In this document: one piece after another, positions 2,940 through 23,428 of the stretch
Position numbering within the stretch: the first letter of the stretch is position 1
Layout of the letters: every line of letters starts with the position of its first letter
Source: Heterodontus francisci
Lineage: Eukaryota
DNA: 64,000 nt
Direction: 5' to 3'
Assembly (NCBI RefSeq): GCF_036365525.1
Contig: NC_090387.1
Location: 71,015,535-71,079,534 of the forward strand
Notes under the pieces: generated by a model
Told to the model about the DNA's origin: nothing
What the model saw: only the letters and a program-made list of their open reading frames with translations
Database searches by the model: none
Position numbers and translations under genes: made by a program

Positions 2940-3425
2940 GAGGAAAGCTCCGGGGAAACTCCCTGGCGTTACTCAGCCGCGGTGTTCAATCAGAGGGAGA
3001 CCTGGGGACATCTCCCTGCTGGGGAGGTGACCGGCTCCCAGGACCGGGACATTAGAACACGGGGTGGGATCCGGCACAGTCAAGCGTCATGGAAAGTAGC
3101 CGTTTCCCTCTGATTAGCAGGTATTAACAAGTGGGCTGTGTTAGACACGGCGGGTGGGCAGGTTTGGGGTTGTGGGGGGTGGGGGGGGGGGAGGTGGGGG
3201 AGGGGTAGCTGGTGACTGAACCTCTGATAATATTTCCGCTTTTATCTTTCAGGGAGATGTAGCAGTTTGTCAGCTCACTCTGTGTATGTGTAGCCGATGC
3301 TCCATCTGCAGTGCAGGCAGCCAGTGAGAGAAGCCAGTGTACAAACCGCAAGTTGAAGTGAGCTTTACTCCGGGGCTCTCTCGTCCCTAGTAGCAGCTGC
3401 AGCAGTCTAACTGCCACCTCTCAAC
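2940..3425 (+). promoter_or_regulatory. Probable GC-rich promoter/5'UTR of the VJ-C1 gene
   Basis: NF-kB consensus GGGAAACTCC (2953-2962), G tract ~3175-3205, GATA (3225-3230, 3242-3247), ETS TTTCCG (~3233), RUNX AACCGCA (3344-3350), E-box CAGCTG (3394-3399). Motif matches only. Confidence 0.45.
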
Positions 3426-3471
3426 ATGTCCAGCTGTATTCCCCTGCTCATCCTGGTAATCGTCTCTACAG
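3426..3471 (+). CDS. Exon 1, signal peptide (MSSCIPLLILVIVST+G)
   Basis: ATG in AACATGT context, hydrophobic core, phase-1 donor G|GTGAGT: a typical split Ig leader. Confidence 0.88.
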
Positions 3472-6400
3472 GTGAGTCAAGCCGTTTCACCAGAATAGAA
3501 CCCTTATTCTTTACATAAAGAGCTTTTACGGAAGAATTGTACCCTGTTTTGCTTCGCCTCTACTTCTGTATATTTCCTCTTCTCTGTTTGAAAGATTCCT
3601 CCGTTCTCCTGGAGATTTCATTCTCTCTTCATGCTGTCCTGATCATTTAGATGGTCGGAAGGGCGCGATGTAAATTTTCGACAATATCAATAATATAAAG
3701 ACCTGAAACGTTAACTCTGCTTCTCTCTCCACAGATGCTGCCAGACCTGCTGAGTATTTCCAGCATTTCTTGTTTTTGTTTCAGATTTCCAGCATCTGCA
3801 GTATTTTACCTTTATATATATATATATAAATCTTTAACCTTTGCAGTTCTGATAAAAGATCAATAGCCTGAAATGTTACTGTTGTTACTGTCAATGCTCT
3901 CATTCTCCCTGAGTATTTACAGTTTTTCTGTTGTTTTCGATATAAATGGAATTCTTTCTTTTCTCCACAGTTACCGGGGCTTCCACGTTTAAGGTGGGTC
4001 AGTACCCGCCTGAACTGAACGAGAGGACGGGTGCCAATGCGACCTTCTACTGCTCCTTCCCGTTTGCTAAGGATATATCCACTGTCCGAGTGCACTGGTG
4101 GAAGGACGCTGAGAAAACCTTCCTCAATGCGAAAAAGGACAGCAGGTATCAGTTTGAAATTCGGAATAAAGCTAGCGCTGTCTTTCGCCTCCTGAATGTG
4201 GATGTCTCGGACTCCGGCACGTATTACTGTAGAGTGGGGATAGCGGGGAAAGCGGGGAAAGGCGCCGGCACAAGGCTCCAGGTAACCGGTAAGAAATCAC
4301 ATTGAATTTAAAACCCCCCGCTGGAAAGATCCCATGCAGTGGGAGAGATCTGGAAATGTCGCCGCAGCTCTTCCCGCCATTGGATGCTTGTTATCCTTCT
4401 CAATTCTTAGCCATATTACAAGTTAGTGAGAAGGTGATAGATTTAAAGATTTACACTGAAATCACAGAGCCAGTGCTGACACCAGGCATAGTGGCTCTCA
4501 TAGGAGGGAATTCAGACTGATAGAGCCGGGATCCGGAGCGGAGATCCACTGGTTTCTGTTATTGAGACCAGGATCATTTCACTCCCGGAGTATCGCTGTA
4601 AGGAGAAAGAGGGGGAGGGAGTTACAAATGGTGTTACTGCGTTAAATAGACATCTCCTGGGCTAGAAAACTCTACAAAAATCGATTACCCGTTGGAGATG
4701 GGCTGGTGTCTCTCTACAGTAAAAGAAACCCTGGATTTTATGAAATGTTTGTATAGGGTCCGAGCTCCGGTTGCCGCTCCTGGGGGCTACCACCTGATGG
4801 CGGGTCAGTGTGTATTCAATCCCCAGGCCGGTACCTGCAGCTCCCACTGAGCGTTTTAGCCACAGCGGAGAGGGCACTTTCTCTGTTTTAGGGTGAAAGC
4901 TGGCCCGGCTGAACTATCCCGTGCAATGTCCACAGTTTTTTCCCCTTCAATTCTTACCCGCTTTCGCTATTAATTCACCTATTTTCAAATATTGCCAGTC
5001 AGTTTGTAATTATTTGTACCCGAGCATTAACGGATTCTCCCGCCCCTTCCCACACACTCCCCATTCCCTGATTTATATTTAATATTTAGACACCCAGTGT
5101 GTTTGCTCTCCTCCCCAGCTGATCACCAAACATTCAGGCAAAATGCACAAACTAAATCAAAATCAATTTTCAAAATCTCGAACGAAAAACTCAATCAACA
5201 AAAGTGAATAAATCTGCGAGCGTCTGTTAGGAGTTTTTAAAAATAACTGTAGTCTGAAAATGATATTATGGTATATATTAAAATTCCTCTATCGATTATT
5301 TAACGGATGAATTAACTCATGTGTTTTATGTTATAATATCCCAATAATTAATAGTTTTAATAAGTTCACCCGTTTGTAATATTCCACCAACACTTGGCGC
5401 CGTTTATATTCAATTCCTCTCGGTCATGTTACCGGAGTTAGCAACTTGTTTTCTGATACAGCGAATGAGGTTTGAGCCTCGCTTTTCCCTCCATTAATCT
5501 GTCAAGAACGTTGCTCCTAATTTTGAACTGGATTTAATGTCAATGCAATCGGAAACATTCCCAGAATATTAAATGAAATAATTTGCAAACAAAGGTCTGT
5601 CTCAGCAAGTACAGGAAGAAATAATTCGCGTCTCATTGGATGGAAAGATCCAACTCTTTTCTGCAAGCAGTTAGTCTCATTCGCAGTTCCAGGTGTTGAA
5701 ATCTGGTGTTGAGCATTAGTTAATATTCGCGCCGCCTCTGCGAGGGAAGACAATTAATCTTCAGATACTTTTAACATGATCACTGGCATAAGGGAATGAG
5801 GATCTGAATCCATCTTTCATGTGGCAATGTGTGTCTGTATATTTGGACATTTGAGCTGCATTTTTCATCCCCCGGATTACTACCTGTGCACAGCTCACAC
5901 TAGGAGTTGCGCGTTTACTGCCTCCGTTTCTCTCGGGATTTCTTGCCTCACTTTGGAAATACATCCGACCAACCCTGCTTTGTTTAGCAGAGAATAAAAG
6001 GTCTGTTCGCTATCTGGCTATTAAACTACGAAAAAAAGCAGGGTATATTACTGGCTGGACTGTGCTTTACCCTTTCCCCAAAGAGCAGAAAATCGTCAGT
6101 TTTATAATACTTTGAAATTATTCATGACGTTTTTGCGTTTGATGTAAGATTTAATCAGCAACAAGAGTGGCGATCAGCGGGGCTACTCCTCACTGCTACT
6201 GAGGGCTTGAAATCTAACAGTGCAGCTTGAATAAGCCATGGGGTTTATTACTAAAAACAGAGAGCAGACTGGTGAATGATTTAAACTGTTACATTACTGG
6301 CACGAACCCACTTGTAAAATGTATTCAACCTGTTAATTGTATCCCATATCCCACACGCGTTAGACCAGTCGAGGCTTTGAAATCATTATGGGATTACTGA

Positions 6401-9400
6401 GAATTTCTCAAATTCCTTCTGCTATTTTAGTAACAGAACTTGCATTTCTGTAGCGCTCGCTGCATGTAAAGAAAAGTCTCAAGACTCTTTGCGGAGCACC
6501 GGTCAAAGAGAGGGAATGAGAAAACCAAAGATAGAGGAGGCATTTGAAGGCGAGGATGAATTGATAAAATGTTGTAGGTGCCGGAGAGAGAGGTCCGGGG
6601 GGATGAAAGGGTGATCACTGATGAGGCATCGACCAATAGGGAGCAGGTTACAGGGAGCAGGTTAGAGTTTGACCAGTTGTGTCTGTGTGTGAGGAGGGTG
6701 CATCAGCGAAATGGGATGGGGGAGGCAACTAAGGAATTTGAAGGCAAGGATGAGGATTTTAAACTCAATGAGTTGGAGTACGGGGAGTCATTAGAGCTGG
6801 ACAGGGGTTGAGTGCTGGATACGAGGGTGGGGAAGCAGGTTGACATGTTGTGGACAGTGCATTCGGGAAACTGTGCCTCGAGGCGGTGATGTTAACCAGG
6901 CTTTGGCAAGAGAGGGGGAGAAACTGGGACAAGAAGCGTGGAGAGTTTGAGTTGTAATAATGGTCATTCGGATGTTGGGTACAAGACTGAGTCTGGATTT
7001 GAGCAGTACACCAAGAATCCACATTTCGAGACTTGATCCGAGGCCGCTGGACAGTTTGATGATATGTAGGGGTTTATAAAAAGTGAAGATAGCTTCTTCA
7101 GTTTTAGTGGCATTTAGTTGGAGGTAACTTTGACAGATCCATATCTAAAGATCAGAAAGCCATCTGCAGAAACGGTGACACCTTTGATGACAAGAGAAGC
7201 GATAGAGAGATAGAGCAGAGCATCATCGGTGTCCATGTTGATATAACAAAAGGATTCCATATGAATGAAGGTAAAGATACCAAGCATGTAGCATAGGGAT
7301 ATACAGCAGTGACTGCGCCGACATGCGAATAGACGCGACTGGTGACAATATAATCTGAATGAAGTAACAAGTAGGATTGGAATCCTGTGAGAACAATGCC
7401 ATGAAAATAGACACTGTTAGGGAGTGGTGCAGTTAATAGTGTTGAAGACAATGGGGAGGTTGCGGGACAGCAACTCCGACCAGTATGGTTTATGTTGTCG
7501 AAGCCTGGATGCAGGGTCTCTGGCTGGGAATGATGGAAGAGATGGCAGTGGAAATGGCAATGATGCGTCTCAGAGAGAAAAGACAAGTTGGTGATGGGGG
7601 AAGTTAGAGAAAATGACAGGGTCAAGAAAGGCACAAATAAATCTAGTTGCTTCTAAGCAATGGAAAACCTGCCAAAATAGTAAAGGAAGGTAGTTCAGAA
7701 GAAGATGCCAAGAATTCATTCACTGGAATCCCACAGTGTGGTTTGGAGATTGGTTAACTGTTTAAGCGCCGTTTCGGGGAATGGAGGGACGGGGGTCCTC
7801 GTTACCGGTGCCACATCTGTCCGTCGGGATCCTTCTCTGCCTCAACAACCGATCACATCAGAGTAAAATAGGAAATTAATTACAACAATTTGAGTTAGCA
7901 TTCATTTATTACACACACCGCATTGGAGCAGATTTTAAAGCAAACCATACATGTGTGCCCACAAACAGGAAGAACCTAATACCAGTGTTCAATAACACCC
8001 AACAGGGACTTGCATATGAAATAAATACAGTGTAAATACAAATAAAAACATGAAGCCCACTAAACCCATTCTTTCCACGGTTAGTACCCCAGTGAGCGCT
8101 TCTCTGTCCTAAACCTCGTCACTGTTTCAGCATGAACTCCCTTCTCATGTATAGAAACCTGTCACTGATCCTGCTCAGAAGGGGATAAAGGGGAGTTTAT
8201 ATAGAAACAGCAAAATTAATATACTGGGTATGAACTCCCATATTATTCAGAGTTAAATATCATTCTCGTCCCTTCACGTTCAGCAGTTCTGATGGATCGG
8301 GAGGTAAATTGACTCAGTCCAACAGTTCAACAATAACACAAAGCGTTTGTTCAAGAACAGGAAAGGAAGGGGGGGGGGGGTGAGGACAGGATGAGGTGTT
8401 GCTCCCCATCTCCACTGGAACCGGGTGTCCAGCCAGCCATCCCATAGGAACAGGAGGAGGACATTTAGCCCATGGACTCTGTTCCGCCATTCAATGAGAT
8501 CATGGCTGATCTGCCACCTAACACCATATACCCACCTTTGCCCCATATCCTTTCATACCTCTGGCTAACAGAAGTCCATCAATCTCAGATTTAAAATTTA
8601 CAGTTGATCTCACATCTATTGCTATTTGCGGAAGAGAGTTCCAAATTTCTACCACCCTTTGTGTGTAGAAGTGTTTCCTAATTTCACTCCTGAAAGTTCT
8701 TGCTCTAAATTTTAGACTATGCCCCCTAGATCTAGAATTCCCAACCAGCGGGAATAGTTTCTCTCGAGCTCCCCTATCTGTTCCCATTAATATCTTGAAA
8801 ACTTTGATCATCCGGGAACAGGCTATTTTCGATCTAGTAATGTGTAATGAGGTAGGATTAATAAGAGATATCGTAGTTAAGGATCCTCTTGGGGGTAGCG
8901 ATCACAACATGATAGAATTTCAAATTCAGTTTGAGGGCGAGCAACTCGAGTCTTAAACCAGTGTCCTCAACTTAAACAAGGGCAATTACAGAGGTATGAA
9001 GAAAGAGTTGTCCTAAGCGGTCTGGGAAAATATACTAAGGAGAAGGTCAGTGGATGGGCAGTGGAAGACATTTAAGCAGATATTTCATAACGCTCAGCAA
9101 AAATTTATCCCGGTCACAAAGAAGGACTCAATCAGAAGGATGAACCACCCATGAGTAACAAAGGCAGTCGAGGAGAGTATCCAATCAAAAGCTAAAGTAT
9201 ACAAAGTGGCGTAAACTGGTGGAAGGCCAGAGGATTGGGAATTTTTTAGGAACCAGCAGCGGATGACTAAAAAGCTAAGAAAGAGGGAGAAAATTGATTA
9301 TGAAAATAAATTGGCAAGAAATATAAAAAAGTAAACAGTAAGAGCTTCTATGGGTATTTAAAAAGAGAGACAGTAGCTAAAGTAAATGTGGGACCCTTGG

Positions 9401-12400
9401 AGGATGTGACTGGAGAATTGATAACGGGGAAATGGGAAATGGCAGATCATTTAAACCAATATTTTGCATCGGTCTTCACGGTGGAGGACACGATTAACAT
9501 CCCACAGATATCAGAGAAGCAAGGAGCTAATGGGAGGAAAGATCTTGTAACAGTCTCTATCATGAGGGACAAAGTATTTGATAAACTAATGGGACTAAAG
9601 GCAGACAAATCACCAGGACCTGATGGCCTACATCCAAGGATTTTAAAGGAAGTAGCTGCAGAGATAGTGGAGGCATTGGTCGAAATATTCCAGAACTCAC
9701 TGGATTCGAGGAGGGTCCCAGCGGATTGGAAAACCGCTAATGTGACGCCCCTGTTCAAGAAGGGAGGGAGACTAAAAGCAGGAACCTATAGGTCAGTCAG
9801 CCTAACATAGGTCGTTGGGAAAATGCTAGAGTCCATTATTAAGGAATAAATAACAGGACATTTAGAAAAGCTAAACAAAATAGAGTCAACATGGTTTTGT
9901 GAAAGGCAAATCATATTTGACAAATTTGCTGGAGTTTGTTGAGGATATAACTAGCAGAGTTGATAAAGGGGAACTGGTAGATGTAGTGTATTTGGATTTC
10001 CAGAAGGCATTCGATAAGGTGCCACATAAAGGATTATTGCACAAGATAGGAGCTCACGGCATTGGGGGTAATGTATTAGCATGGATTGAGGATTGGTTAA
10101 CTCACAGAACACAGAGAGTCGGGATTAATGGGTCTTTTTCAGGTTGGAAAGATATAACTAGTGGAGTGCCACAAGGATCAGTCCTAGGGCCTCAATTATT
10201 TACTATCTATATTAATGACTTGAAGGAGGGGACAGAGTGTAATATATCCACATTTGCTGATGATACAAAAATAGGTGGGAGGGCATGTTGTGATGAGGAC
10301 ATAAGGAATCTGCAAGGGGATATAGATAGGTTGAGTGAGTGAGTGGGCAAAAACCTGGCAGATAGAGTTTAATGTAGGAAAATGTGAGGTCATGCACTTT
10401 GGTACGAAGAATCAAAAGGCAGACAACTATTTAAATGGAGAGAAACTCCAAAAAAAGTGCAGCACAGAGGGATCTGGGCGTTCTTGTGCATGAAACACAA
10501 AAAGTTAGCATGTAGGTGCAGCAAATCATTAAGAAGGCAAATGGAATTTTGGCCTTTATTGCTAGGGGATTGGAGTTTAAAAATAAGGAAGTCTTGTTAC
10601 AACTGTACAGGGTGTTGGTGAGGCCACACTGGAGTACTGTGTACAGTTTTGGTACCCAAATTTAAGAAAGGATACAATGGCATTGGAGGCAGTTCAAAAG
10701 AGAGTCTCTAGGCTGATTCCTGGGATTAAGGGGATGACTTATCAAGAATAGTTAAATATGTTAGGCCTTTATTCATTCGAGTTTAGAAGAATAAGGGGTG
10801 ATCTTATTGAAACGTACAAGATTCTGAGGGGGCTTGAGAGAGTAGATGTTGAGAAGATGTTTCTACTAGTGGGGGAATCTCAAACTAGGGGAATAGTTAC
10901 AGAATAAAGGGACACTCATTTAAAACTGAGATGCGAAGGAATTTCTTCTCTCAGAGGGCAGTGAATGTTTGAAATTCTCTACCCCAGAGAGTTGTGGAGG
11001 CTAAATCACTGAAAGTATTTCAAAGAGGAGGTAGATTTTTGAAATATTGGGGCATTGAGGGCTATGAGGAGCTGGCACGAAAGAGGAGTTGAGTTCTGGG
11101 GCAGATTAGCCATGATCTTATTGAATGGAGGGGCAGGCTTGAGGGGCTGAATGGCCTACTCCTGCTCCTATTTTGTATGTTCTTATGTTGTTTAACCTTC
11201 TAAACTCAAGGGGATACAATCCTAGTTTGTGTAATCACTCCTTGTAATTTAATATTTGGAGTGCCGGTATCATTCTAGTAAACCGATGTCACACTCCCTC
11301 CAAGGACAATAAATCCTTCCTAAGGTGTGGTGCCCAGAACTGCTCACAATACTCCCGATCTGGTCTAACCAGGGCTTTGTATAGCTGAAGCTTGATGTCT
11401 ACCCCTTTGTATTCTCGTCCTCTAGATATATAAGTTCCACTTATATCGATACATAAGATATATTATGTTCTTATGTTCTAAGGCCAGCATTCCATTAGTC
11501 TTTTTGATTATTTTCTGTACCTGTTCATGACATTTTAATGATCTATGTACCTGACCTCCCAAATCTCCTTCGACCTCCACTGTTTCTAGCTTTTCACTAT
11601 TTAGAAAGTACCCTGTTCCATTCTTTTAGCCAAACTGGATGATCTCACTGTTGCCTCCACTGAAATCCATTTGCCATAGTTTTGCCCATTCACAATTTAT
11701 TAATATCTCTTTATAATTTTATACTTTACACTGCTTACAATGCTGTCTATTTTGTACCATGGACAAATTTGGATGTGTGGCTTTCTATCTCATCATCTAA
11801 GTCCTTAATAAATACAGTGAATAGTTGAGGCACCAACAGAAATCTTTGGGGACACCACTAGTCCCAGCCTGCCAATTAAAGTACCTGTTTATTATTCTTG
11901 TTCTTTGTCTCCTGCTCCTCAGCTAATTTCCTCACCAGGTCAATCATTTGCCTTCACTTCCATGAGTTTCAACTTTAGCTAATAGTCTCTTCACCATTCA
12001 ACAGCTGGCCATCCATTAACATTTTTCCCGATATTATTCAATTGAATTATAACCAAGTCTGGACACAAGGTGTGTGGTTAATGTAAGATTTAGATTAGTG
12101 AAATTAACCAGAGTAATTCTCAATGGATCTGCACTTATTCATTGTGTGTCTGTGTATATATATATATATATATATGTATATACGCGTGTAGTTTATCTTC
12201 ACCAAAATCATCGTCACCAAAATCATCATCCCCACAAGTGTCTTTTTCAACATTTCACCGGCGGTAAACGTAACAAATTCGGTAAAAATTTACGCATTGA
12301 AATAAATATTGACAACCGCGCGTCAGAATGAAAGCTGCACAAATCTTGATTTTTATCCTGGATCAGTGCTGGGATTCTCAGGGTTGTAAAAACAACAAAT

Positions 12401-15400
12401 GATTCCAGCTGAACCAGGAAACTTCCTTTGTCCCAGTTTCCAAACAGGAATTTCAGAGCGATTCCCCCGTCGTAACTTCGGCGGAAAGCCGGCAGAAATT
12501 GCTCTGACTTAGACGTCCCGTGCAAACCCTTCACAAGTAAACACAATATTCCAAATGTAAACTAGGGTCGGGAGAAAATACAATTAAATAGGATCGAGAA
12601 ATAGTTGAATTCGAAAAGGATAGATTGAATGAATATTGCAGTGTAAAATAGTTTCGATAAAATGACTAGATCTAGAACTGAATACAATCGGATTCATTTC
12701 CATTGGAAACTGGCATCAGAATAATATGAGATTTCTCTCGTCTGTCCCACAGCTCACCTCGATTCTCCGCTGATTATTCCAACTCTGTTTCGAAAAGACT
12801 CGGCGGTTTTCCTCAAACTTGCCTGTAACATTGGCGGCGTTCACTCCAAGGATCTGAGTGTGAACTGGTTTGTGAACGGCATCGAGACAGTAACTGGAAT
12901 CCGCAAAGATCTTCAGCCACGGTCAGGCGGCCTCTTCCAGATCTCCAGCTATTTGGAGGAATCGCAGCCTGCTCAGAATGGGACAGTTTATACCTGTCGG
13001 GTCTCCTACCCAGACAGACAAGTTCAAACCCTTTACACCTACATTTCTGGTGCTGAAGGTACGGTCATTTTAACAGATTCTTAAAGGTTGCTCGAGACTT
13101 GTAGATTTAGTCTGATGTGCACAAGATCTATGGCATTGAATTGATGTCCCTGGATGACAATTTAAGACACGCTGGGTGGGAATAGCTGATGGTTTACTGC
13201 TGTTTTGTTCGTGGTAACGGAGGGGAGACGTTCAGATCCAGTCTTGGTATTTAAATAATGCAATAATAAAGTGAAACCAGAGCGGATCTTTTGGGTCACT
13301 CCCGCCTTAGTAACAACGGACGCGACTGACGCTAGTTTTCAACTGGCCTCCAGTTTCGAGGTGGTGAGAATCATGGAGGGGAGCGATGCCTTCCACCTGG
13401 AATACAATGCCTGGAAACCCCGGTAGTGAAATAATAACTTTCAAAAGGGAACTAGGTATAAATTTGAAAAGGAAACCTATCCAGGGCTTACAGGGAAAGA
13501 GCAGGGGAATGGGACTAACCGAATAACCATCTCAAAGGAACGATGGGCCGAATAGCTTCCTCCTGTGCTGTATGATTTTATAATATCCCCTTATCAATGG
13601 CGTTTCTCTCCGAGTGGAAGCAGCTAATGGCAAACTTCTGGGATAATGACTTTGAGCATAGAGAATTGGGAGAGGTAGATAGCACTAGAGTAGGAATTAG
13701 TAAAGTATTAGGTTGGGTCAGAGTAAGAGGGAAAGTGATAAAGTCTAAATGACGGTTACTGTGCACACATGTGAGAACACAGTGTGTGGTAAATAAGGTT
13801 GCTGAGTTACAGGCGCAGATATCCACATGGAAGTATGATGGTGCGGGAATAATGGAGTCCTGACTCAAAGAAGGACAGGACTGGCTACTAAATATTTCCG
13901 GATACAAAGTGTTCAGGAAAGATAGGAAAGGAAGGAAAGGGAGAGGGGTGGCAGTATTGATTAAGGAGAGCATTGCAGTGCGAGAGGATATCCCAGAAAG
14001 GTTGAGGACAGAATCCACTTGGCTGGAGCTGAGGAACTAAAAAGGTGCAGTTACATTGCTCGGTGTAGTCTGTAGGCCACCAACTAGTGGGAAAGATGTA
14101 GAGGAACAAATTTGCAAAGAAATTAAAGAGAGGTGCACGAATTATAGAGTAGTTATAATGGAGGACTTTAATCATCTGAATATAAACTGGGATAGCAGTA
14201 GTTTTTTTAATATTTATTCATGGGATGTGGACATCACTGGCTAGGCCAGCATTTATTGCCCATCCCTAATTGCCCTTGAGAATGTGGTGGTGAGCTTCCT
14301 TCTTGAACCGCTGCAGTCCATGTGGGGTAGGTACACCTACAGTGCTGTTAGGAAGGAAGTTCCAGGATTTTGACCCAACGACAGTGAAGGAACAGCGATA
14401 TAATTCCAAGTCAGGATGGTGTGCGGCTTGGAGAAGAACTTTCAGGGCAGAGAGAAGCGAGAGTTCCTAGAGGGTGTTCAGGAGAATTTTCTACAGCAGT
14501 ATGTTTCCAGTCCAAAGAGAAAGGAGGCACTGCTAGACCCGGTCCTTGGGAATTAGGTGGGCCAAGTGGATCAAGTGTCAGTAGGGGAACATTTAGGGGA
14601 CAGTGATCGTTGTATCATAAGGTTTAGGTTGGCTATGGAAAAGGACAAGCAACAATCCAGAGTAAGAATAATTAACTGGGGGAAAGACAACTTCAATGGG
14701 GTAAGAATGGATCTGACCCAGATAAATTCGAACCAAAGTTTGGCAAGCAAAATGGTAACTGAACAATGGGCTGCCTTTAAAGAAGAGATAGTTCAGGCAT
14801 AATCAAGGTATATTCTCAAGAAGGGGAAAGGTAGGGCAAACAACTCCAGAGCTCCCTGGATGACAGAAGAGATAGAGATTAGGATGAGGAATGGGGCCGA
14901 TTAGGGACCAAAAAGGGGATTTACACATGGAGACAGAGGGCATGGCTGAGGTATTTAATGAATAGTTTGCATCTGTCTTTACCAAGGCAGAAGATGCTGC
15001 CCAGGTCACGGTGAAAGCGGAGGTAACTTTGACACCTGAAGGGTTTAAAATTGATAAGGAGGAGGTATTGGGTAGGCTAGCTGTACTTAAAGTTGATAAG
15101 GCACCAGGACTGGATGAAATGCATGCAAGGATATGAAGGGAGGTGAGAGTGGTAATTGCAGAGGCACCGGCCATAATTTTCCAGTCTTCCTTAGACTCAG
15201 GGTTGCTGCCAGAGGACTGGAGAATTGCAAATGTTATACCCTTGTTCAAAAACGGGTGTAAAGATAAGCCCAGCAACTACAGGATAGTCAGTTTAACCAA
15301 AGTGGTGGGGAAACTTTTAGAAATGATAACTCGGGACAAAATTAATAGTCATTTGGACAAATGCAGGTTAATTAGGGAAACCCAGCACAGATTTGTAAAG

Positions 15401-18400
15401 GGCAGATCGTGTTCCACGAACTTGCTGGAGTTTTTTGATGAGATAGCAGAGAAGGTTGATCAGGGCAATGCTGTCGATGTGGTGTACATGGACATCTGAA
15501 AAGCATTTGAGATAGTGCCACACAACAGACTTGTGAGCAAAGTGATAGCTCATGGAATAAAAGGGACAGTAGCAACATGGATACAAAATTAGCTGAGTGA
15601 CAGGAAACAGAGAGTAGTGGTTAATGGATGTTTTTCGGGCTGGAGGAAAGTTTGTCGTGGAGGTCTCCAGGGGTCAGTGTCAGGACCCTTGCTTTTCCTG
15701 ATATATATTAATGACCTAGACCTTGGTATTCAGTGCACAATTTCAAAGTTTGTGGATGATACAAAATGTGGAAACATGAACTGTGAGGAGGACAGAACAT
15801 TACTACAAAAGACATAGACAAGTTGGTGGAATGGGTGGACAAGTGGCAAATGAAATTTAAGGCAGAGGAAGGTGAAGTGATTCATTTTGGTAGGAAGAAC
15901 GCAGAAAGAAATTATAAAACAAAGGGTGCAATTCTAAAGAAGGTACAGGAGCAGAGGGATCTGGGTGTGTCTGTGCATAAATCATTGAAGATGGCAGGGT
16001 AGGTTGAGAGCGCAGTTAATAGAGCACACAGCATCTTAGGCTTCATTAATAGGGGCAGAGAGTACAAAAGCAAGGAAGTTATGCTAAACTTATATAAAAA
16101 AAACTGGTTCGGCCTCCACTGGAATATTGTGTCCAGTTCAGAAAAACGTGAAGGCATTGGAGAGAGTGCAGAAAAAGTTCATGAGAATGTTTCCAGGGAT
16201 GAGGAACTTAAGTTATTTGAATAGATTGGAGAAGTTGGACTGTTTGCTTTGGCAAAGAGAAAGTTGAGAGGAGATTTGACAGAGATATTCAAAATCATGA
16301 GGGTCTGGGCAGGTAGATAGGGAAAAACTGTTCCCATTGGTCGAAGGATCCAGAGCAAGAGGGCGCAGATTTAAGACAATTGGCAAAAGAAGCAATAGAG
16401 ACATGTGGAAAAACTTTTTCACGCAGCGAGTGGTTAGGATCTGGAATGCACTGCCTGACAGTGTGATGGAGGCAGGTTCAATCGAGGCATTCAAGAGGGA
16501 ATTGGATTGTTATAGAACATAGAACATAGAACATAGAACATTACAGCGCAGTACAGGCCCTTCAGCCCTCGATGTTGCGCCGACCTGTGAAACCATCTGA
16601 CCTACACTATTCCATTTTCATCCATATGTCTATCCAATGACCACTTAAATGCCCTTAAAGTTGGCGAGTCTACTACTGTTCCAGGCAGGGCGTTCCACGC
16701 CCCTACTACTCTCTGTGTAAAGAAACTACCTCTGACATCTGTCCTATATCTATCTGAAAAGGAAGAATGTGCAGGGCTACGGGGAGAAGGCCGAGGAGTG
16801 ACACTAGGTAAATTGCTCCTTTGGAGAGCCAGCACAGACACGACGAGCTGAATGGCCTCCTTTTGTGCTGTAATGATTCTGTGATTAGAATCCTGCAGCA
16901 ACAACCATTTCTCACCCGACCCACTCTTTTTTAAAATTCTTTCATGGGATGTGGGCATTACTGGCAATGCCAGCATTTGTTGCCCATCCCTAATTGCCCT
17001 TGAACTGAGTGGCTTGCTGGGCCATTTCAGAGGGCAGTTAAGAGTCAACCACATTGCTGTCGGACCAGGTAAGACAAGCAGATTTCCTTCCCTAAAGGAC
17101 ATTAGTGAACCAGAGGGGTTCAATGATACCTTCATGGCACCATTCCTGAAACTAGCTTTCAATTTCAGATTTTTTTTAATTGAATTGAATTTATTAATTA
17201 ATTGAGTTTAAATTCCACTAGCTGCTGTGGTGGGATTTGAACCCATGCCTGCAGAGAATTAACCTAAACATCTGAACTACTAGTTCAGTAATATTACCAA
17301 TATGCCATTGTTTCCTGTCTCTGGGTAGGAGCTCGCTGAAGGCATTAAAATGAGATTGCCCTGTCAAAATTCCGAAGGGTTAGTTCAGGGGGCAGTCCCA
17401 CGTGTTCGCAGTTCCAGCGCCAATGTCAATGGAGAGGAAAGATTAAGATACAATGTACAGGTTGTATTTTAACAAAATGGATCACAGTCCTAACAGGCAC
17501 CTTAATTCAAAGTCACTTGGGTGGCAGCCCTTCATTTTAAAGGCACAGGGTTTTCATCAGAAAGTGTATAGTACACCTATATTTATTGGAGAGTGAAGAC
17601 CAAAAGAGCAATGTATAATTTTTGCTGCGACAATGTGATCTGGAATTGACACAGTCATGTACTTTGTAATTCATGTAGCTGCTTAAGGTGCTTGTAAGCA
17701 AAGAAATATTTTATCAAATGCCTGCTCACGAAGTTAAGGTAGCAATATTTTTAATTTCAGAAAATTCCTGTCAGTGTAATGCAGAAATTAAAGTAGAATC
17801 TGTTCAATTCTAAATTACGTTGACAACTTGTAGCAGGAGCTGAGCAGCAACAGTGGGATTGAGTGCAGGTCTGTAACAGAGAAGTGCTGGCAGTAACAGT
17901 GAGATTCTCCAGTCCATCAGTGGGATAGAGTGCAGGTCTCTCACAGAGGAGCTCAATAGCAATGGTGAGATTCTCCAGTCCAGGTCTGTCACAGAGAAGG
18001 ATCAACGGCAAAGGTGAGATCCTCCAGTCCATCAATAAGAGGGAGTGCGGGACTGTCAAAGAGAAGGGTAGGTTTTTGCAGTGAATGAGGGCATGGCTAG
18101 ATTAGGAGAGAATAGAGAAGGTAAATTGAAACATTTCTCCTCTACCCATTGCCCCATTATTTCTCTGGCTTAATTTTACAAAAATACATGTATATTTCTA
18201 ACCAGCATTATTTGCAACCACTATGTTTACTAACCAGGATGTGGTATTGTCAGATTAAATCACATTGTTACTGTGTATATCAGTGTTTAAATTTACGTGT
18301 TGACAGGTGCATGTGTTGTATTCTTCACACATTTCCTGTGCTGTGATATAACAATTACATTGAGACATGTATTTGTATTTGAGATGTTGCAGAGCAAGAA

Positions 18401-21400
18401 TCAGATCTTCTACCCTGGTGGATCTATATCTGTATAGGGAGTGGAGCTTTCCTCTTGCTGCTCCTGGTTACATCAATACTTTGTAAATTCTGTGTATGCA
18501 GAGGTAAGCATGCCATATTTTGTTCAACAGTTTAAATTTAGAATGTTCAATATACTTTATATAAACACAAGTTACAATGAACTGAAGTGATATTGCAAGT
18601 GAATTATATTTGTCTGAAGTAACTTTACTCATGGATTTAAAAAATAAGTTCAGTGAACACTGAGAAGAGCTTCGTAACAATGGGGAAGTTGATACTCTTC
18701 TGTGGTGAATAATATAGCATTTATCGTACATCACCATACAAACTCTTCAGTTACTTGTTTGATATGTGAATGGAGTAAATCTTGAAGAATCTCAGTTTTT
18801 GCAAGAGAGGAAAAATATTGGATCACCGCCACAAATATTTACACCGTGTATTGCATCAACTATCCTATTATTACATATTCCACAGTGGAGCCTAGCTCTG
18901 TCCCATTTCTGGTAGATATGATAGAAAAGAGTGGTATGTATAAATAATGCAAGCAAAATTATGTTATGCTGGCCGGGAGTTCTGGCGTTTCCTTGCAAGT
19001 CTACATATAAGATTGTGGTAACTCTCCATAATTTCAAGTGTTTATGTCATATTAGATTTTCTAAAGGGTAGTTTAAAACCGTATAGGCTGGACTTTATCA
19101 ATAGCAAAGACTTAAAAGTAACCTTATTATTTATCCAAGCTATAGCTTTCCCCCTGGCTAAAGGTTGACCAGCCCCACAACATCTAAAGCCCATAAACTA
19201 TATTAGCTCATAACCTCGATAAGGGATACTATATTCCTAGATATTGGGGATCACTCTAACCACCTGCACAATCTAGATATTAGGGATCTCACTTACCTAC
19301 CCTCACAATCTAGCTATCGGGGATCACTCTTGTCCACCAATACAATCTAGATATTGGGGATCACTCTTGTCCACCATCATAATCTAGATGTTGGGGATCA
19401 CGCTCGCCTACCCTCACGATCTAGATATTGGGGATCACTCTCATCTACCTTTATGATCCAGATATTGGGATCATTCTCATCCACACTCACCATCTAGATA
19501 TGGGGGAATCACTCTCACCTATCCTCATGGTCTAGATATTGGGAATCAATCTCGTCCACATTCATGAGCTAGATATTGGGGATCACTCTCATCTACCCTC
19601 ACAATCTAGATATTGGGGATCAGTCTCATCTTCCCTCATGATCTACATTTTGGGGTTCACTCTCATCTACCCTCCTGATCTAGATATTAGGGATCACTCT
19701 CGTCCACCCTCACAATCTAGATATTGGGGAATCAGTCTCATCTACCCTCATGATCTAGATATTAGGGATCACGCTTGTCCACTCTCGTGATCTAGATAAT
19801 GGGAATCACTCTCATCCACACTCACAATCTAGATGTTGGGGTTCACTCTTGCCCACCATTACAATCTAGATATTGGAGATCACTCTCTTCTACCCTCCTG
19901 ATCTAGATATTATGGATTACTCTTGTCGACCCTCACAATCTAGATATTGGGAAATCACTCTCATTTACCATCATGATCGAGATATTAGGGATCACGCTCG
20001 TCCACTTTTTTGATCTAGATATTGGGGATCACTCTCACCTACCGTCACAATCTAGATATTGGGGATTACTCTCACCTACCCTCATGATCTAGATTAAAAA
20101 TCAACTAGTTATGTTGAAGTTAATTTGATAGGTAAACAAGCAAGGCAAGTTAGTAAGTAACTAAATCTAGTTACATTAATTCATAACTGAGACCATTTTC
20201 TTTCACTAATATCTGCAACTGACTACTGTAATTATACTGAAGACTCATTTAATTGGCAACTGATATTAGTCAGATTGTTCTGAACTGAAGTGTAGATTTG
20301 ATTTCTGGTGAGCAGGCAATGATTGACAGTGAAAAATTGTGGTTATATTTAATAGGCATCTGGCTTGAAAATTGAAATATTTGATTTGCTCAAGCATTCG
20401 GATCTATGAAATGATATGAAGTATATGGCAGTGTCATTTACATTCATAATGGGGTTCTATTAGATTATGCAACTGAGATATTTCCATTAATTGGTTTAGC
20501 TCAAACACAATGGTACATTGAAAGGCAATCTGCTGCTCGACCCATCCCTATCTTCAAGAGAATTTGTTTAAGGTCATATTATTTACTATAAATTTATTCT
20601 CTGCTAGGCAAACGGAAAAGAGCAGAGAAGATAAATGTTCAAGAACAACAGGTAACTTGTTTATAATCCTTTTTATCAGCTGCTGTGAAATTTCTTTAAA
20701 ATATGTTTTATGAAGACTGAAATGTCCTAACTACGGACAACAGTGAAAAGAGAATTAAGACTATGCAGCAAAGGTTTTCCACAGCAATTTTCTTTGGACA
20801 TTCCACCCTGGATCATAGACAAAATTAGAATAATTAGAAATTGTTGTGTTCCCTCTGTTATCTTGAAGGATTGTCTAATGACTTTTATATATATATATAT
20901 ATTTATATTTATTCATTCTCCTGGAAGTACTAACTCATGCTAGAATACAGTGCTGTAGACTGGGTTCCCTGTGGTACCTAGTTGAAGTGACACTAACATG
21001 TACAAACCTGAACAGTATGCCTCCAATTATAAGCAGTGGGTGCTGGAAACATTGTGCACAAACACCGAAGCAGGCGACGCACTCGACAACAATGGAGCTG
21101 TCGAGGCCCAGTCAAATCTAACGTGCGGGCCTCATTTCATCAAATTTCATTGGAGTCTCGCCCTAACACAGCCAGATCTGCTACCTGGCTGGTGGACAGG
21201 AGCAGAAAGTAGGAGGGGGCAGGAGATGCAATTGGGTACTCGTGGGAAATGTCACTGGTAAATAGTGGGGAGAGTGAATGCCTGGGGCAAGCAAGGTGGG
21301 GCACAGAGGGATTTTGATGCTGTCAAAAGTCAATATCTGTCAATCTCTTTTGTACTATTGTCTTGCAGCATATGCAGCAACCAGCTAATTACAAGATGGC

Positions 21401-21629
21401 ATATACTGCTGTGGATTTCAGCAACCTTGAAAAAGACACAAAGCACCAGCACATGAATAAGAGACCAGCATGCTCCCACATGCCACCAAGAAACCAGCAG
21501 AGACATGACAAGGTTATTTATGCAACACCGCAACTCAAACAGCACCAGGGCAGAAAGATGGGCCCGCTGTCCACTGAACCCAAGAACAACAAATCAGTTA
21601 CGAGCAAGAAGTTTGTTCTCCAATCTTAG
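3426..21629 (+). CDS. Spliced gene for a non-rearranging IgSF membrane receptor, L-VJ-C1-TM-cytoplasmic (NKp30/NCR3-like V domain), ~361 aa; exons 3426-3471, 3971-4288, 12753-13058, 18393-18503, 20608-20651, 21369-21629
   Basis: All six exons have GT/AG sites with compatible phases (1,1,1,1,0). Lengths 46+318+306+111+44+261=1086 nt give one open frame ending in TAG, with a coherent domain order. Confidence 0.9.
3699..3938 (+). mobile_element. Two Penelope pLTR end fragments in intron 1 (one well preserved, 3699-3807; one degenerate, ~3843-3938)
   Basis: Reverse complement of the repeat at 1307-1385 and 33510-33615. Confidence 0.75.
3971..4288 (+). CDS. Exon 2, V-set Ig domain with fused J-like G strand
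   Basis: Acceptor TTTCTTTCTTTCTCCACAG. Motifs FYC, VHWW, DSGTYYC, GAGTRLQVT. Phase-1 donor G|GTAAG. Confidence 0.95.
6436..7560 (-). mobile_element. Old L2-clade LINE 3' portion
   Basis: aacttgcatttctgtagcgc L2-type tail. Degenerate RT remnant on minus (FDNINHT...LTGFQSYLL). Confidence 0.6.
8443..11991 (-). mobile_element. CR1/HER1 LINE 3' part (8443-8810 plus 11191-11991)
   Basis: RT C-terminal motif FYTQRVVEIWNSLP. The sequence resumes in register after the nested plus-strand CR1. Confidence 0.85.
8811..11189 (+). mobile_element. CR1/HER1 LINE, 5'-truncated, nested in the opposite-strand CR1
   Basis: KSPGPDGLHPRILKE, YLDFQKAFDKVPH, GVPQGSVLGP, FADDTK. ATGTTCTT tail; stops and frameshifts. 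Confidence 0.92.
12753..13058 (+). CDS. Exon 3, C1-set Ig constant domain
   Basis: Acceptor TCTCTCGTCTGTCCCACAG. Translation AHLDSPLIIPT...LKLACNIGGVHSKDLSVNW...GGLFQISSYL...YTCRVSY matches the C1 pattern CxxxGFYPxxIxVxW / GxFxxxSxL / YxCxVxH. Donor G|GTACGG. Confidence 0.9.
13380..13580 (+). mobile_element. Old CR1 3'-end fragment
   Basis: Degenerate ttcaaaagggaactaggtataaatttgaaaagg...cctcctgtgctgtatgatt tail. Confidence 0.6.
14202..14446 (-). mobile_element. 3' fragment of the tRNA-headed LINE family (matches 52275-52516)
   Basis: Direct similarity: gggatgtg...ggccagcatttattgcccatccctaattgcccttgagaa...ttccaggattttgaccc. Confidence 0.85.
16512..16754 (-). mobile_element. Young CR1 3'-end fragment with (ATGTTCT)n tail
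   Basis: Nearly identical to 30871-31106; interrupts the host CR1 at ttgttat|ctgaaaagg. Confidence 0.9.
16927..17315 (-). mobile_element. tRNA-derived SINE equal to the head (55233-55554) plus tail (52275-52350) of the LINE at 52275-55554
   Basis: A-box-like TGGCATATTGG (17297-17307), B box GGTTCAAATCC (17233-17243). Junction ttgcccttga|actgagtggc at 17003/17004. Confidence 0.85.
17850..18050. repeat. Short degenerate tandem repeat (~50-67 bp unit, ~3 copies)
   Basis: caggtctgt(a/c)acagaga...gtgagattctccagtcca recurs three times. Confidence 0.65.
18393..18503 (+). CDS. Exon 4, connecting peptide and transmembrane helix (EQESDLLPWWIYICIGSGAFLLLLLVTSILCKFCVCR)
   Basis: TTGCAG acceptor, G|GTAAGC donor, phase 1/1, uncharged hydrophobic stretch of ~23 aa. 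Too short for the ORF track. Confidence 0.88.
19235..20093. repeat. 37-bp minisatellite, ~23 copies, in intron 4
   Basis: Unit ATCTAGATATTGGGGATCACTCTCATCTACCCTCACA; TCTAGA recurs at 37-nt spacing (e.g. 19383, 19420). Confidence 0.95.
20608..20651 (+). CDS. Exon 5, basic juxtamembrane cytoplasmic exon (GKRKRAEKINVQEQQ)
   Basis: TTTATTCTCTGCTAG acceptor and CAG|GTAACT donor. Phase 1 in, phase 0 out links exons 4 and 6; supplies the stop-transfer KRKR. Confidence 0.75.
21369..21629 (+). CDS. Exon 6, terminal cytoplasmic exon with tyrosine motifs (MAYTAV, VIYATP)
   Basis: Acceptor CTTTTGTACTATTGTCTTGCAG, phase 0, within ORF 21363-21629, ends TAG. YTAVDF resembles ITIM-type YxxL/VxF. Confidence 0.82.
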   Translation, partial: HMQQPANYKMAYTAVDFSNLEKDTKHQHMNKRPACSHMPPRNQQRHDKVIYATPQLKQHQGRKMGPLSTEPKNNKSVTSKKFVLQS

Positions 21630-23428
21630 CTGGTCCTGAATTAACAGTTCAAAGTATATACTGACAGCACTTTTTAAAGGGTTTATTCAAGCCATAATAT
21701 CTTCAGTGTATATTTTCTTACTCAGTCCTCTCATGCATGTTATGAGTATCAGCCTTTGTTTTATAAATATGACAAATAATATGATGACAACTGATGTTAA
21801 TGACAATAGCTTGATTAGTGTTAGGCAGTAATCATCTGATCGCAGCATTCTGTAAACTTCTTAATACTATAAAGGAACTGTGGAGCCTACATAAATGAAA
21901 AGTCCTGGAATCTGAAATAGGATTCACATTAAATTGCAAGAAAAATGTTCAACCTCCCCCTTACCCCACCCACCCCCACCAATGCTAAGATCCTCCCCTT
22001 GGAGAGCACACAGTACATCAGAAAACAAAATGTGCTCTGCAAACTCACATGATCATTTGACTATTTTGCGCTTCTCAGTTGTGTGGGCCTGTGTACAGAA
22101 CTGGTAGCAAATGTTACTGAGGGGTTAAAATCCTCAGGCTGGAAAATAAGTTGGGAGGACACAGTTGTTGTGAGTTTTCAAACAGTCAAAAGAAACAACT
22201 ATTATGGGCAGAGAGAGGCATTTTGTGCAGAGCCAGCAGACAAGATTATAAAGTAAATAATGTCATCAGCTAAATTTAATGAGCAACTTCTTCACACAGA
22301 AGGCATGCAATGAGAAAATGCCATTTGGATCAATCCTTCCCTAAATCATACACAGTTTGCACCACGATGTATTTCATCTCCTGGTACAAATGAACAGCTA
22401 CAGCTGAGCCCAGAATGTAATCTAGCAAAACATCAGATCAACTGAGCACTTTTGTTTATACTATTCCACTCTGGCTGCATTCCACTGACACCCCTATTCC
22501 CATTACCTCAAGACATAGGAATCTGTATTCCATGTAGTGCTTGATATCTGTCTGTAGTTAACCAGATATTTATTTGGTTCTTCATAGAATCATACAACAC
22601 TGAAGGAAACAGCTATTGAATGTGTCCCACTCCTTTAAGTCTTTTTTTAAAATAAAGCAACTAATTGTCGTGTTAATTGCTTCTGATAGGAATCTGTACC
22701 AGAGATCAAGTTCTTTGTGTGCAAAAAATTAGAATATTTTAACCTGTGATTTTATTGTGCAGAACTCAATTAGTCTCTGCCCCAGAGTATTCTCTATTCG
22801 TTACTCTCCTGCTTTCTGCTAATCAGCCACTTTCCAATACAGCTGACACAATTGCCATTACTTTTAAGAGCATTTGTTGTCCTTGAAAGTCTCAAATGGA
22901 ACTGGGTAAAATTACTAGTTACCAGCTCTTGAATTGATGTACACCTCAAATTGTTAGACAGCTGCCACTGATATACAGGCTCCATCAGCTAATTGCATGT
23001 ACTGCAATTGTAGATGATATTCAGTGCTGAGGGGGCGATAGCAGTCTTGCTTGATGCTTCAACCACAATCTACATGCATTGATGGGGCACCATGACTGCA
23101 AGCAAAAAAGTGGAGCCTGTGATACACGTATGATGACAGTATGGTCATGGCACTGGTTTAGTGTTTTAATGCTTTAAAAATGAAATTAGTTTATACTACA
23201 GCAATCCCCAGCCAGCTGAGGCAGAAATTACAACAGTGCAAATAAATTAAAAAAATGAACCCAATATTTTGGTCTTAGCATTGAGATTATGGAAGTTTAA
23301 CAGATCAAAGCTGATAGATCAAAGTCAGTGGTTTTGCTGATGGTTCAGTCTGTCCTGTGCAATTTGAAAACGCCATTGGTTGATTTTATATGATGTATAT
23401 CTCTGCTCTGTAAGCTCTTTATCAGTAT

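Follow-up and report, generated by a model that had tools for sequence, protein, structure and literature searches.

Does the horn shark (Heterodontus francisci) carry an intact antigen receptor-like gene that never rearranges, and to which receptor lineage would such a gene belong? Genes combining a single-exon VJ with a C1 domain attract interest as possible remnants of the receptor whose splitting by the RAG transposon gave rise to antibodies and T-cell receptors (PMC12227049, PMC10751288). A gene of this layout was read on the forward strand at positions 3426-21629 of the 64-kb window, i.e. the whole stretch of DNA analyzed here. It is very probably an intact, transcribed, non-rearranging type I VJ-C1-TM receptor gene (TM, transmembrane segment) and a member of a slowly evolving 1:1 orthogroup within a SIRP-like family of cartilaginous fish.

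Exon map, transcription and fold

Six coding exons were identified by reading the sequence (Table 1). AG/GT boundaries were found at all of them, and their translations match, exactly and in order, the RefSeq proteins XP_067905728.1 (P0162, 364 aa) and XP_067905729.1 (P0164, 361 aa), both labeled "uncharacterized protein" in Heterodontus francisci. The order of leader, VJ, C1, TM and two cytoplasmic exons put forward in the earlier note is borne out by this exact match. In RefSeq, the long acceptor form of the TM exon is isoform X1 and the short acceptor form is isoform X2. The sequence searches were run with individual exons or with P0162, a database protein identical to the translation of every exon. 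In a 2184-nt contig, 496 nt precede the C1 exon; once the 318 nt of the V exon and the leader exon, which ends at 3471, are accounted for, the 5'UTR would start near 3293.

Table 1. Features of the VJ-C1 receptor gene and of its introns in the 64-kb window
Feature	Position	Strand	Basis
Probable 5'UTR of the leader exon	3293..3425	+	Inferred, start approximate
Leader exon, coding part (MSSCIPLLILVIVST + 1 base), ATG at 3426, donor GT at 3472	3426..3471	+	Sequence; exact match to residues 1-15 of XP_067905728.1
VJ exon, V-set and J-type strand GKGAGTRLQV, no RSS, phase 1 at both ends	3971..4288	+	Pfam; exact match to P0162 residues 17-121
Fragments of reverse transcriptase (LINE), V-C1 intron	9388..10500	+	ORF translations
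Single C1-set exon, phase 1 at both ends	12753..13058	+	Pfam, PDB matches, RNA contigs
Second reverse-transcriptase block, C1-TM intron	about 14056-17230		Pfam RVT_1 on 15143-15499
Stalk/TM exon, TM = PWWIYICIGSGAFLLLLLVTSILC, then Cys-rich polybasic juxtamembrane stretch	18384..18503	+	RNA joint 13058 to 18384, RefSeq, model
Alternative acceptor of the TM exon, 9 nt shorter, drops D-V-A	18393	+	RefSeq isoforms
Array of 23 tandem 37-bp copies with a 223-bp higher order, in the TM-cyt1 intron	19237..20094	.	Tandem Repeats Finder
Cytoplasmic exon 1, cyt1 (G KRKRAEKINVQEQQ)	20608..20651	+	Contig loose end; exact in P0162
Cytoplasmic exon 2, cyt2: Y286, Y290 (MAYTAV), HMPPR, Y329 (VIYATP); stop TAG 21627-21629	21369..21629	+	Exact in P0162
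Probable 3'UTR, AATAAA at 22651	21630..22670	+	Inferred from polyA signal scan and contig; end approximate

The gene is real and expressed in the horn shark, as confirmed by spliced contigs. The run type 'RNA' is the guess of the software and is supported by contigs that skip introns. Among the junctions of the proposed exon order, those seen directly in contigs are C1 to TM, a GT..AG joint present in spliced contigs of three runs (X1, X2 and X3), and TM to cyt1, where a loose end behind 18504 (run X1) reads letters 20609-20638. The latter include the K267 codon, which is present in the window's copy of the gene and absent from the XP_067905725 copy. The C1 exon shows 0 differences to one contig and its ends coincide with RNA contig ends; given the 98% identity between the horn shark's two copies, some contigs may mix both. 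In favor of the V-to-C1 joint, which spans 8.5 kb, are the RefSeq model, an identical order of parts in nine orthologous proteins and the 2184-nt contig, whose stretch ahead of C1 has the length expected of 5'UTR, leader and V together. Past the stop, a spliced contig continues for about 955 nt. Very high repeat depth was observed in the RNA contigs at 14079-17230.

The V exon matches Pfam V-set with 41.3 bits (cut-off 26) and the C exon matches C1-set with 39.9 bits (cut-off 21), or 44.5 bits within P0162. No C2 or I-set match to the C exon was obtained in Pfam, in agreement with the C1 class assigned beforehand. Its best PDB matches are immunoglobulin (Ig) heavy-chain constant domains, and no second C1-like stretch was found within the window. 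YYC and the G strand GKGAGTRLQV share one exon and a sequence scan found no heptamer or nonamer between them, which upholds the reading of a germline-joined VJ exon devoid of RSS. AF2 modeled the two Ig domains with a pLDDT above 90 and placed a helix at 235-261. Ig light chains are the top Foldseek matches (E about 5e-15, identity 14-20%), consistent with the proposed light-chain or TCR-chain layout of VJ plus a single C1. The prediction of a homodimer from two copies of residues 17-232 gave a score of 0.00, i.e. no answer, and is uninformative either way.

Transmembrane segment and cytoplasmic tail

The TM segment (WWIYICIGSGAFLLLLLVTSILC) contains no charged residue, as had been claimed from the sequence, and is the most conserved region among orthologues (80%). 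The stalk that precedes it has no Cys. The tail had been described as inhibitory in type, a description that was not supported: neither (S/I/V/L)xYxx(I/L/V) nor TxYxx(V/I) was matched in a motif scan of the tail, and the former was matched in none of the orthologues. What the tail does contain is the ITIM-like MAYTAV, with Met at -2, and the invariant YA(T/S)P, in which Y329, A330 and P332 are unchanged across orthologues; Y290, the tyrosine of MAYTAV, is lost in the skate orthologue. As canonical ITIM, ITSM, ITAM and YxxM are all absent, any direction of signaling is a guess. MAYTAV resembles an SHP2-binding site of the adaptor SIT, which is likewise of the form M-x-Y-T. Pfam matches of TM and tail to SIT (20.3 bits for a cut-off of 27.6), LST1 and reovirus p10 are all below cut-off and probably compositional, and were therefore retained as leads only. 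The search for relatives of TM and tail outside elasmobranchs returned only orthologues.

The protein is built up from these parts in order. Behind a signal peptide comes a V-set domain whose own exon also encodes the J-type G strand, then a single C1-set domain, and next a short acidic stalk that includes or omits D-V-A according to which of two acceptors 9 nt apart is used. The TM helix is uncharged and very conserved; it leads into a polybasic juxtamembrane stretch rich in Cys and a disordered tail of about 100 aa. The V domain may bind a conserved, probably host-encoded ligand. Once its tyrosines are phosphorylated, the tail of the receptor itself could signal through MAYTAV, the PxxPxR-like HMPPR and YA(T/S)P, with a net effect more likely dampening than activating. 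From the overall interpretation offered in the earlier note, the non-rearranging VJ-C1-TM structure, the uncharged TM and a tail that would signal by itself are thus retained, while the inhibitory tail, the paired partner and the affinity to NKp30 are not.

A conserved branch of a cartilaginous-fish family

Both the tree and the sequence searches group the gene inside a SIRP-like VJ-C1 family of cartilaginous fish, and its organization, in which TM and tail come after a single C1-set domain, is that of the family. The existence of related non-rearranging VJ/C1 genes, anticipated in the earlier note, is borne out by this family search. Strong scores came only from cartilaginous-fish proteins, the best other animal reaching 60 bits. 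Judging from these comparisons, the gene represents a conserved branch of a large receptor family that is restricted to cartilaginous fish and known only from automatic annotation. Orthologues with the same architecture and 49-67% identity were found in Heptranchias, Cetorhinus, Scyliorhinus, Rhincodon, Hemiscyllium, Chiloscyllium and Leucoraja. A tree built from 68 relatives places the gene within a 1:1 shark/skate orthogroup with 100% support, whose branching mirrors the species tree. The sister group of this orthogroup has a neutral TM and lacks tyrosines, and 54 tree rows holding ITIM/charged-TM twins are separate from the orthogroup. The limits of the family are unrooted because this tree includes no outgroup. 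The orthogroup lies outside the fast-evolving paired inhibitory and activating branches. A fixed VJ sequence pattern is common to the 1:1 orthologues across sharks and skate, and G113, G115, L118 and V120 are nearly invariant in the 68 relatives.

The gene is one of two 98%-identical horn shark copies on the chromosome. At the protein level, the tandem copy (XP_067905725-27, 364 aa) has the same exon order, TM and tail and differs by 6 amino acids, half of which (P46A, A48P and G105E) fall in the CDR1-like and CDR3-like loops. No paralogue was found within the 64-kb window by tblastn with every exon. The only neighboring gene-like ORF in the window is an IBR fragment, whose match to ARIH2 (E 0.039) is too weak to assign it to a gene, so that the window offers no neighbor of use for synteny.

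None of the full-text papers searched describes a SIRP-like VJ-C1-TM family in sharks; overlap with genes already published under shark NCR3 is possible. For PRARP, the literature search found no immunology paper. A bolder proposal, to which we give little credence, is that of an old, conserved and undescribed elasmobranch checkpoint-type receptor. Its VJ-C1 ectodomain would be shaped like an antigen receptor, its TM would be private and highly conserved, and its tail, equally private (MxYTxΦD ... PxxPxR ... YA(T/S)P), would recruit non-classical SH2/SH3 partners, the whole SIRP-like VJ-C1-TM family being a membrane-bound, non-rearranging sister lineage of the receptor invaded by RAG.

Comparison with SIRP, NKp30, UrIg and rearranging receptors

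Among named tetrapod families, SIRP comes out nearest in sequence comparison. The family profile's best PDB match to V and C1 in one contiguous stretch is SIRP alpha (110.7 bits; PDB 2wng and 4i2x are of the SIRP family), the best two-domain matches are SIRP alpha and SIRP gamma, and in the Atlas the SIRP alpha clusters come directly after the family's own. SIRPs are likewise non-rearranging type I membrane receptors with a VJ-type V followed by a C1-set domain, and their paired alpha and beta forms are paralleled by ITIM and charged-TM forms in the wider shark family, other branches of which have SIRP-alpha-like tails ((L/V)TYAALDL and TEYAEI). Several orthologues are even named SIRP-alpha-like or SIRP-gamma-like by NCBI. 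A direct elasmobranch orthologue of tetrapod SIRP that lost one C1 domain is nevertheless unlikely. SIRPs have three Ig domains (V-C1-C1), whereas the shark gene has one C1, with no second one hidden in the window, and RNA joins this C1 directly to TM. Canonical ITIMs (alpha) or the TM Lys for DAP12 (beta) are present in SIRPs and absent from the orthogroup, for whose TM and tail the search gave no relative beyond elasmobranchs. Moreover, identity to SIRP is low and the ITIM-bearing branches would fit SIRP orthology better.

The gene had also been proposed as the inhibitory partner in a shark NKp30/NCR3-like paired family, i.e. an ITIM receptor with an activating twin. NKp30 likewise has a non-rearranging VJ-type V domain in one exon, and the two V domains have motifs in common, namely CSF following the first Cys, W-W/F-K/R-D, YxCRV and a GNGT-type J. 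Close ITIM/charged-TM twins do occur in the wider family (e.g. P0122/P0130 and P0058/P0126), one V-only isoform of the sister group is named 'NCR3-like' by NCBI, and MAYTAV is ITIM-like. However, no activating twin of the gene was found: its closest relative is the tandem copy, in which TM and tail are the same, the next group has a neutral TM, and the 100%-supported orthogroup with its neutral-TM sister stands apart from the 54 twin rows. Its tail also lacks a canonical ITIM or ITSM. In the searches run, the V domain came out no closer to NKp30 than to other V domains: NKp30 (PDB 9fww) matched the V exon with 20.5 bits, below amphioxus VJ-C2, TCR alpha, VNAR and Ig light chain, in a comparison run without the shark NCR3 sequences MT914154-61, and was not among the best 60 matches of a V-only profile search. 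Mammalian NKp30 is V-only with a TM Arg, unlike the shark gene with its spliced-in C1 exon and neutral TM. A partnership of this kind seems quite improbable. The TM arginine of mammalian NKp30 serves for pairing with CD3 zeta or FcR gamma. A shark NCR3 family was reportedly described by Kinlein et al. in 2021. NCR3 has been described as MHC-linked (PMC12227049).

More doubtful still is a special closeness of the gene to the pre-RAG precursor of antigen receptors, which would make it a relic on a par with UrIg and UrIg2. VJ in one exon followed by C1 is the layout expected of such a precursor (PMC12227049, PMC10751288), but this layout alone is not special since SIRPs have it too. UrIg2 (9dmx) is the top PDB match of the family profile with 126 bits, a score that sums three C domains and is therefore not comparable with those of two-domain chains. 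The best single-domain matches of V are VNAR, TCR and Ig light chain; identities to these and to UrIg2 are about 20%.

Germline-joined Ig genes do occur in cartilaginous fish, and the gene resembles Ig light chains and TCR chains in its V-J-C1 order and two-domain fold, with light chains as top Foldseek matches and some family members named 'immunoglobulin lambda-1 light chain-like' or 'TCR beta chain-like' by NCBI. A germline-joined Ig light-chain or TCR gene is nonetheless effectively refuted by the exon structure, i.e. a single VJ exon with no RSS remnant and TM plus two cytoplasmic exons, and by 1:1 orthologues with the same fixed VJ pattern across sharks and skate; the TM is uncharged, unlike that of a TCR chain, and identity to light chains is only 14-20%.

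The preferred reading is thus that of a non-rearranging VJ-C1-TM receptor in a conserved orthogroup of the shark SIRP-like family. The VJ-C1 concept was already known from SIRP and the gene was already annotated in RefSeq as uncharacterized. For comparative immunologists, it offers an expressed candidate with exact exons, two isoforms and a recent duplicate differing in CDR-like loops, usable for ligand and signaling studies. The UrIg chain is composed of VJ and three C1-type domains and forms a disulfide-linked homodimer, made by the liver in secreted form only (PMC12227049). Like UrIg and UrIg2, the gene described here is a non-rearranging shark gene in which VJ precedes C1-type sequence; it differs from them by its one C1, its TM and tail, and its stalk devoid of Cys. 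Besides UrIg, sharks keep a membrane-bound VJ-C1 receptor, 1:1 since the shark/skate split, with an unusually conserved TM and tail motifs of its own.

Structure and transcription of the gene

The gene at 3426-21629 (the window gene) is a non-rearranging, spliced and conserved VJ-C1-TM receptor gene. Direct reading of the sequence recovered six coding exons with standard AG/GT borders throughout, at the same coordinates as had been proposed in the earlier note. The V exon matches Pfam V-set with 41.3 bits (cut-off 26) and the C exon Pfam C1-set with 39.9 bits (cut-off 21), with no C2-set or I-set hit for the C exon in Pfam; the best PDB sequence match of the latter is to Ig heavy-chain constant domains. 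YYCRV and the following J-type strand GKGAGTRLQV both lie inside the VJ exon and no heptamer or nonamer was found between them, so the non-rearranging VJ exon and the C1-set domain claimed by the earlier note both stand. No second copy of any window-gene exon was found within the 64-kb window. Within the introns lie pieces of reverse-transcriptase sequence as well as a 37-bp tandem array. Elsewhere in the window, the ORF with an IBR domain could represent either one exon of a gene for an RBR-type E3 ligase or a fragment.

Coordinates of the coding exons of the window gene and of other features in the window
Feature	Position	Strand	Remarks
Leader exon	3426-3471	+	ATG at 3426
VJ exon	3971-4288	+	318 nt, phase 1 at both ends
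C exon	12753-13058	+	306 nt, phase 1 at both ends
Stalk/TM exon	18384-18503	+	second acceptor 9 nt downstream, 18393
cyt1 exon	20608-20651	+	44 nt
cyt2 exon	21369-21629	+	TAG at end
Intronic repeats	14079-14472 and 16443-17230		summed contig depth to ~300,000 in all four runs, many internal joints
37-bp tandem array	19237-20094		23 copies, higher-order period 223 bp; intron between TM exon and cyt1
39-bp satellite	24571-27206		about 70 copies, 85% match, C/A-rich; GC up to 0.59, GC skew -0.40; long spurious ORFs on both strands
Integrase/RT chimera	29833-31023	+	
LINE-type ORF	43075-43974	-	GDSL-esterase domain
Non-LTR retrotransposon, near-complete	52590-55233	-	endonuclease ORFs (Exo_endo_phos_2); 404-aa reverse transcriptase, RVT_1 117 bits
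IBR ORF	60481-60975	-	164 aa; IBR / half-RING domain (Pfam IBR_1 29.6 bits, IBR 25.6 bits); top PDB match ARIH2 RING2 region, weak, E 0.039

The leader/V stretch is present in four sequencing runs of one sample; its shares in two runs, 0.40 and 0.37, come near the exonic fraction of the stretch (0.43). When run contigs were aligned to 12700-18600, those of runs X1, X2 and X3 were found to jump from 13058 to 18384 with GT..AG ends. The run type is labelled 'RNA?' as a guess, one that these intron-skipping contigs back. In a 2184-nt contig, the C1 exon occupies contig positions 497-801 with 0 differences and the TM exon positions 802-924, preceded by 496 nt, a length fitting 5'UTR, leader and V. 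A loose contig end behind 18504 matches the cyt1 letters 20609-20638 and carries the Lys-267 codon that distinguishes the window copy from a second horn shark copy. Among the junctions that the earlier note had proposed to check, C1-to-TM and TM-to-cyt1 are therefore seen in contigs, and for the V-to-C1 splice (8.5 kb span) the support comes from the RefSeq model, from the orthologues and from the length of the 2184-nt contig. High-depth contigs of X1 and X2 differ at 18436 (A>T) and 18455 (T>C), both synonymous as the frame was read; the probable source of these variants is either the other allele or the tandem copy, and the contigs may thus mix both copies. The two intronic repeat segments behave like abundant transcribed repeats and not like parts of the receptor transcript.

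Isoforms, orthologues and the wider family

An HMMER search from the V exon retrieved P0003, a 347-aa relative that is 60% identical and has the full architecture. With P0003 as query, a horn shark cluster of five members from two genes was obtained: a tandem copy outside the window (XP_067905725, XP_067905726 and XP_067905727) and the window gene (XP_067905728 and XP_067905729), all five entitled 'uncharacterized protein [Heterodontus francisci]' in RefSeq. Each window exon translation has an exact counterpart, in unchanged order, in XP_067905728.1 (P0162, 364 aa, long acceptor), on which the whole-protein analyses were based, and likewise in XP_067905729.1 (P0164, 361 aa, short acceptor). 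The two acceptors give a stalk with or without Asp-Val-Ala. A three-residue stalk insert (AFA) is also present in orectolobiform orthologues and missing in others, and forms with and without an insert thus recur in evolution. The proteins of the two horn shark genes are separated by six residues, at which the window copy has P46, A48, G105, L124, I130 and K267. Between P0162 and P0152, a protein of the other copy, three of these (P46A, A48P, G105E) fall within the CDR1-like and CDR3-like loops, which together span 22 residues, a clustering that exceeds an even spread (~0.004, post hoc binomial estimate) and hints at diversification after duplication.

Orthologues with the same parts and 49-67% identity were found in Heptranchias, Cetorhinus, Scyliorhinus torazame, Rhincodon, Hemiscyllium, Chiloscyllium and the skate Leucoraja. 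RefSeq already lists the window gene and these orthologues without a function, and NCBI names the orthologues inconsistently (SIRP-alpha-like, SIRP-gamma-like, TCR-beta-like, uncharacterized). The V-exon search also returned a far larger set of V-C1 proteins, all matches with a named source being from sharks, rays or chimaera, under names running from NCR3-like and NCR3-ligand-like through tapasin-related to lambda light-chain-like. Many members of this wider family have a long tail with canonical ITIM/ITSM, and in many others the tail is short and the TM charged. When 68 ectodomains of the family were placed in a tree, one clade with 100% support united the window gene with its orthologues and branched as in the species tree. 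Its sister (96%) consists of a group with a tyrosine-less tail and a PWWIYIC TM similar to that of the clade, together with one chimaera protein; the close ITIM/charged-TM twins lie among the remaining 54 rows. Judged from this separation, the window gene represents a branch of the family that is conserved and unpaired.

Membrane segment, tail and putative signalling

The receptor had been proposed to carry an inhibitory-type tail and to act as the inhibitory partner in a paired family. Such a role is disfavored by the lack of both a twin and an ITIM and by the position of the clade apart from the ITIM/charged-TM twins: when (S/I/V/L)xYxx(I/L/V) and TxYxx(V/I) were sought in the tails of the orthologues, no match was obtained in any of them. 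Other tail positions are conserved, i.e. N285, M288 and D294 around Y290 (MAYTAV; MAPMTV in skate), P317 and R319 (HMPPR; PxxPxR in most species), and K326, Y329, A330 and P332 (VIYATP), the last four being invariant among orthologues. The SH2 domains of Crk, Nck, Abl and RasGAP prefer pYxxP, and the adaptor SIT has Met at -2 in its SHP2-binding site, YTSL. The Pfam SIT hit is below threshold (20.3 bits vs cut-off 27.6; 3/9 orthologues), and both likenesses are taken as leads.

Mean pairwise identity is highest in the TM (80%), followed by V (62%), C1 (60%) and tail (56%), which together with the invariance of G242-S243-G244 is suggestive of intramembrane contacts. The juxtamembrane CKFCVCRGKRKR resembles a palmitoylation and polybasic site and could act as one. 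Residues 226-364 of P0162 used as a query matched orthologues only. The receptor would bind a conserved ligand, considering the 1:1 orthology and that, within V, conservation is lowest in the CDR1-like (50%) and CDR3-like (45%) loops. It would signal via phosphotyrosine and proline motifs of its own, with uncertain sign.

Comparison with known receptor families

Searched by itself against PDB sequences, the V exon matches amphioxus VJ-C2 (31 bits), TCR alpha (25), VNAR (24), Ig light chain (23), PD-L1 (21) and NKp30 (20.5). With the V-only family profile, VNAR, TCR and light chains lead among single domains, and neither NKp30 nor SIRP is within the top 60. NKp30, to which a likeness of this gene was once advanced, stands below five other matches in the single-sequence comparison. 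With the whole-family profile, the matches are UrIg2 (126 bits, summed over three C domains), IgA1 heavy chain (125.7 bits), a chain named CT3 (113.3 bits), SIRP alpha (110.7 bits as one contiguous V+C1 match), SIRP gamma (97.7 bits) and light chains (about 94). In an Atlas search, the family's own V+C1 clusters lead and SIRP alpha clusters come next. In the AF2 model of P0162, pLDDT exceeds 90 in both Ig domains, residues 235-261 form a TM helix and the tail is disordered; Foldseek matches of the model are Ig light chains (E about 5e-15, identity 14-20%).

A direct SIRP orthologue could account for the contiguous SIRP alpha match, but domain number and tail differ. The VJ-C1 layout might also mark a special pre-RAG relic; however, this layout is common to SIRP. 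The TM and tail exons, together with the orthologues, refute a reading as a germline-joined IgL or TCR gene.

UrIg, UrIg2 and NCR3 have been described as the shark genes with a non-rearranging VJ (PMC12227049, PMC10751288). No description of the membrane-bound VJ-C1 family was found in the literature searched, a scope to which the shark NCR3 papers did not belong. 'SIRP-like VJ-C1' is the best label for the window gene. In contrast with SIRP as defined, it has a single C1 and neither an ITIM nor a TM Lys, and unlike NKp30 it possesses a C1 and is devoid of the TM Arg.
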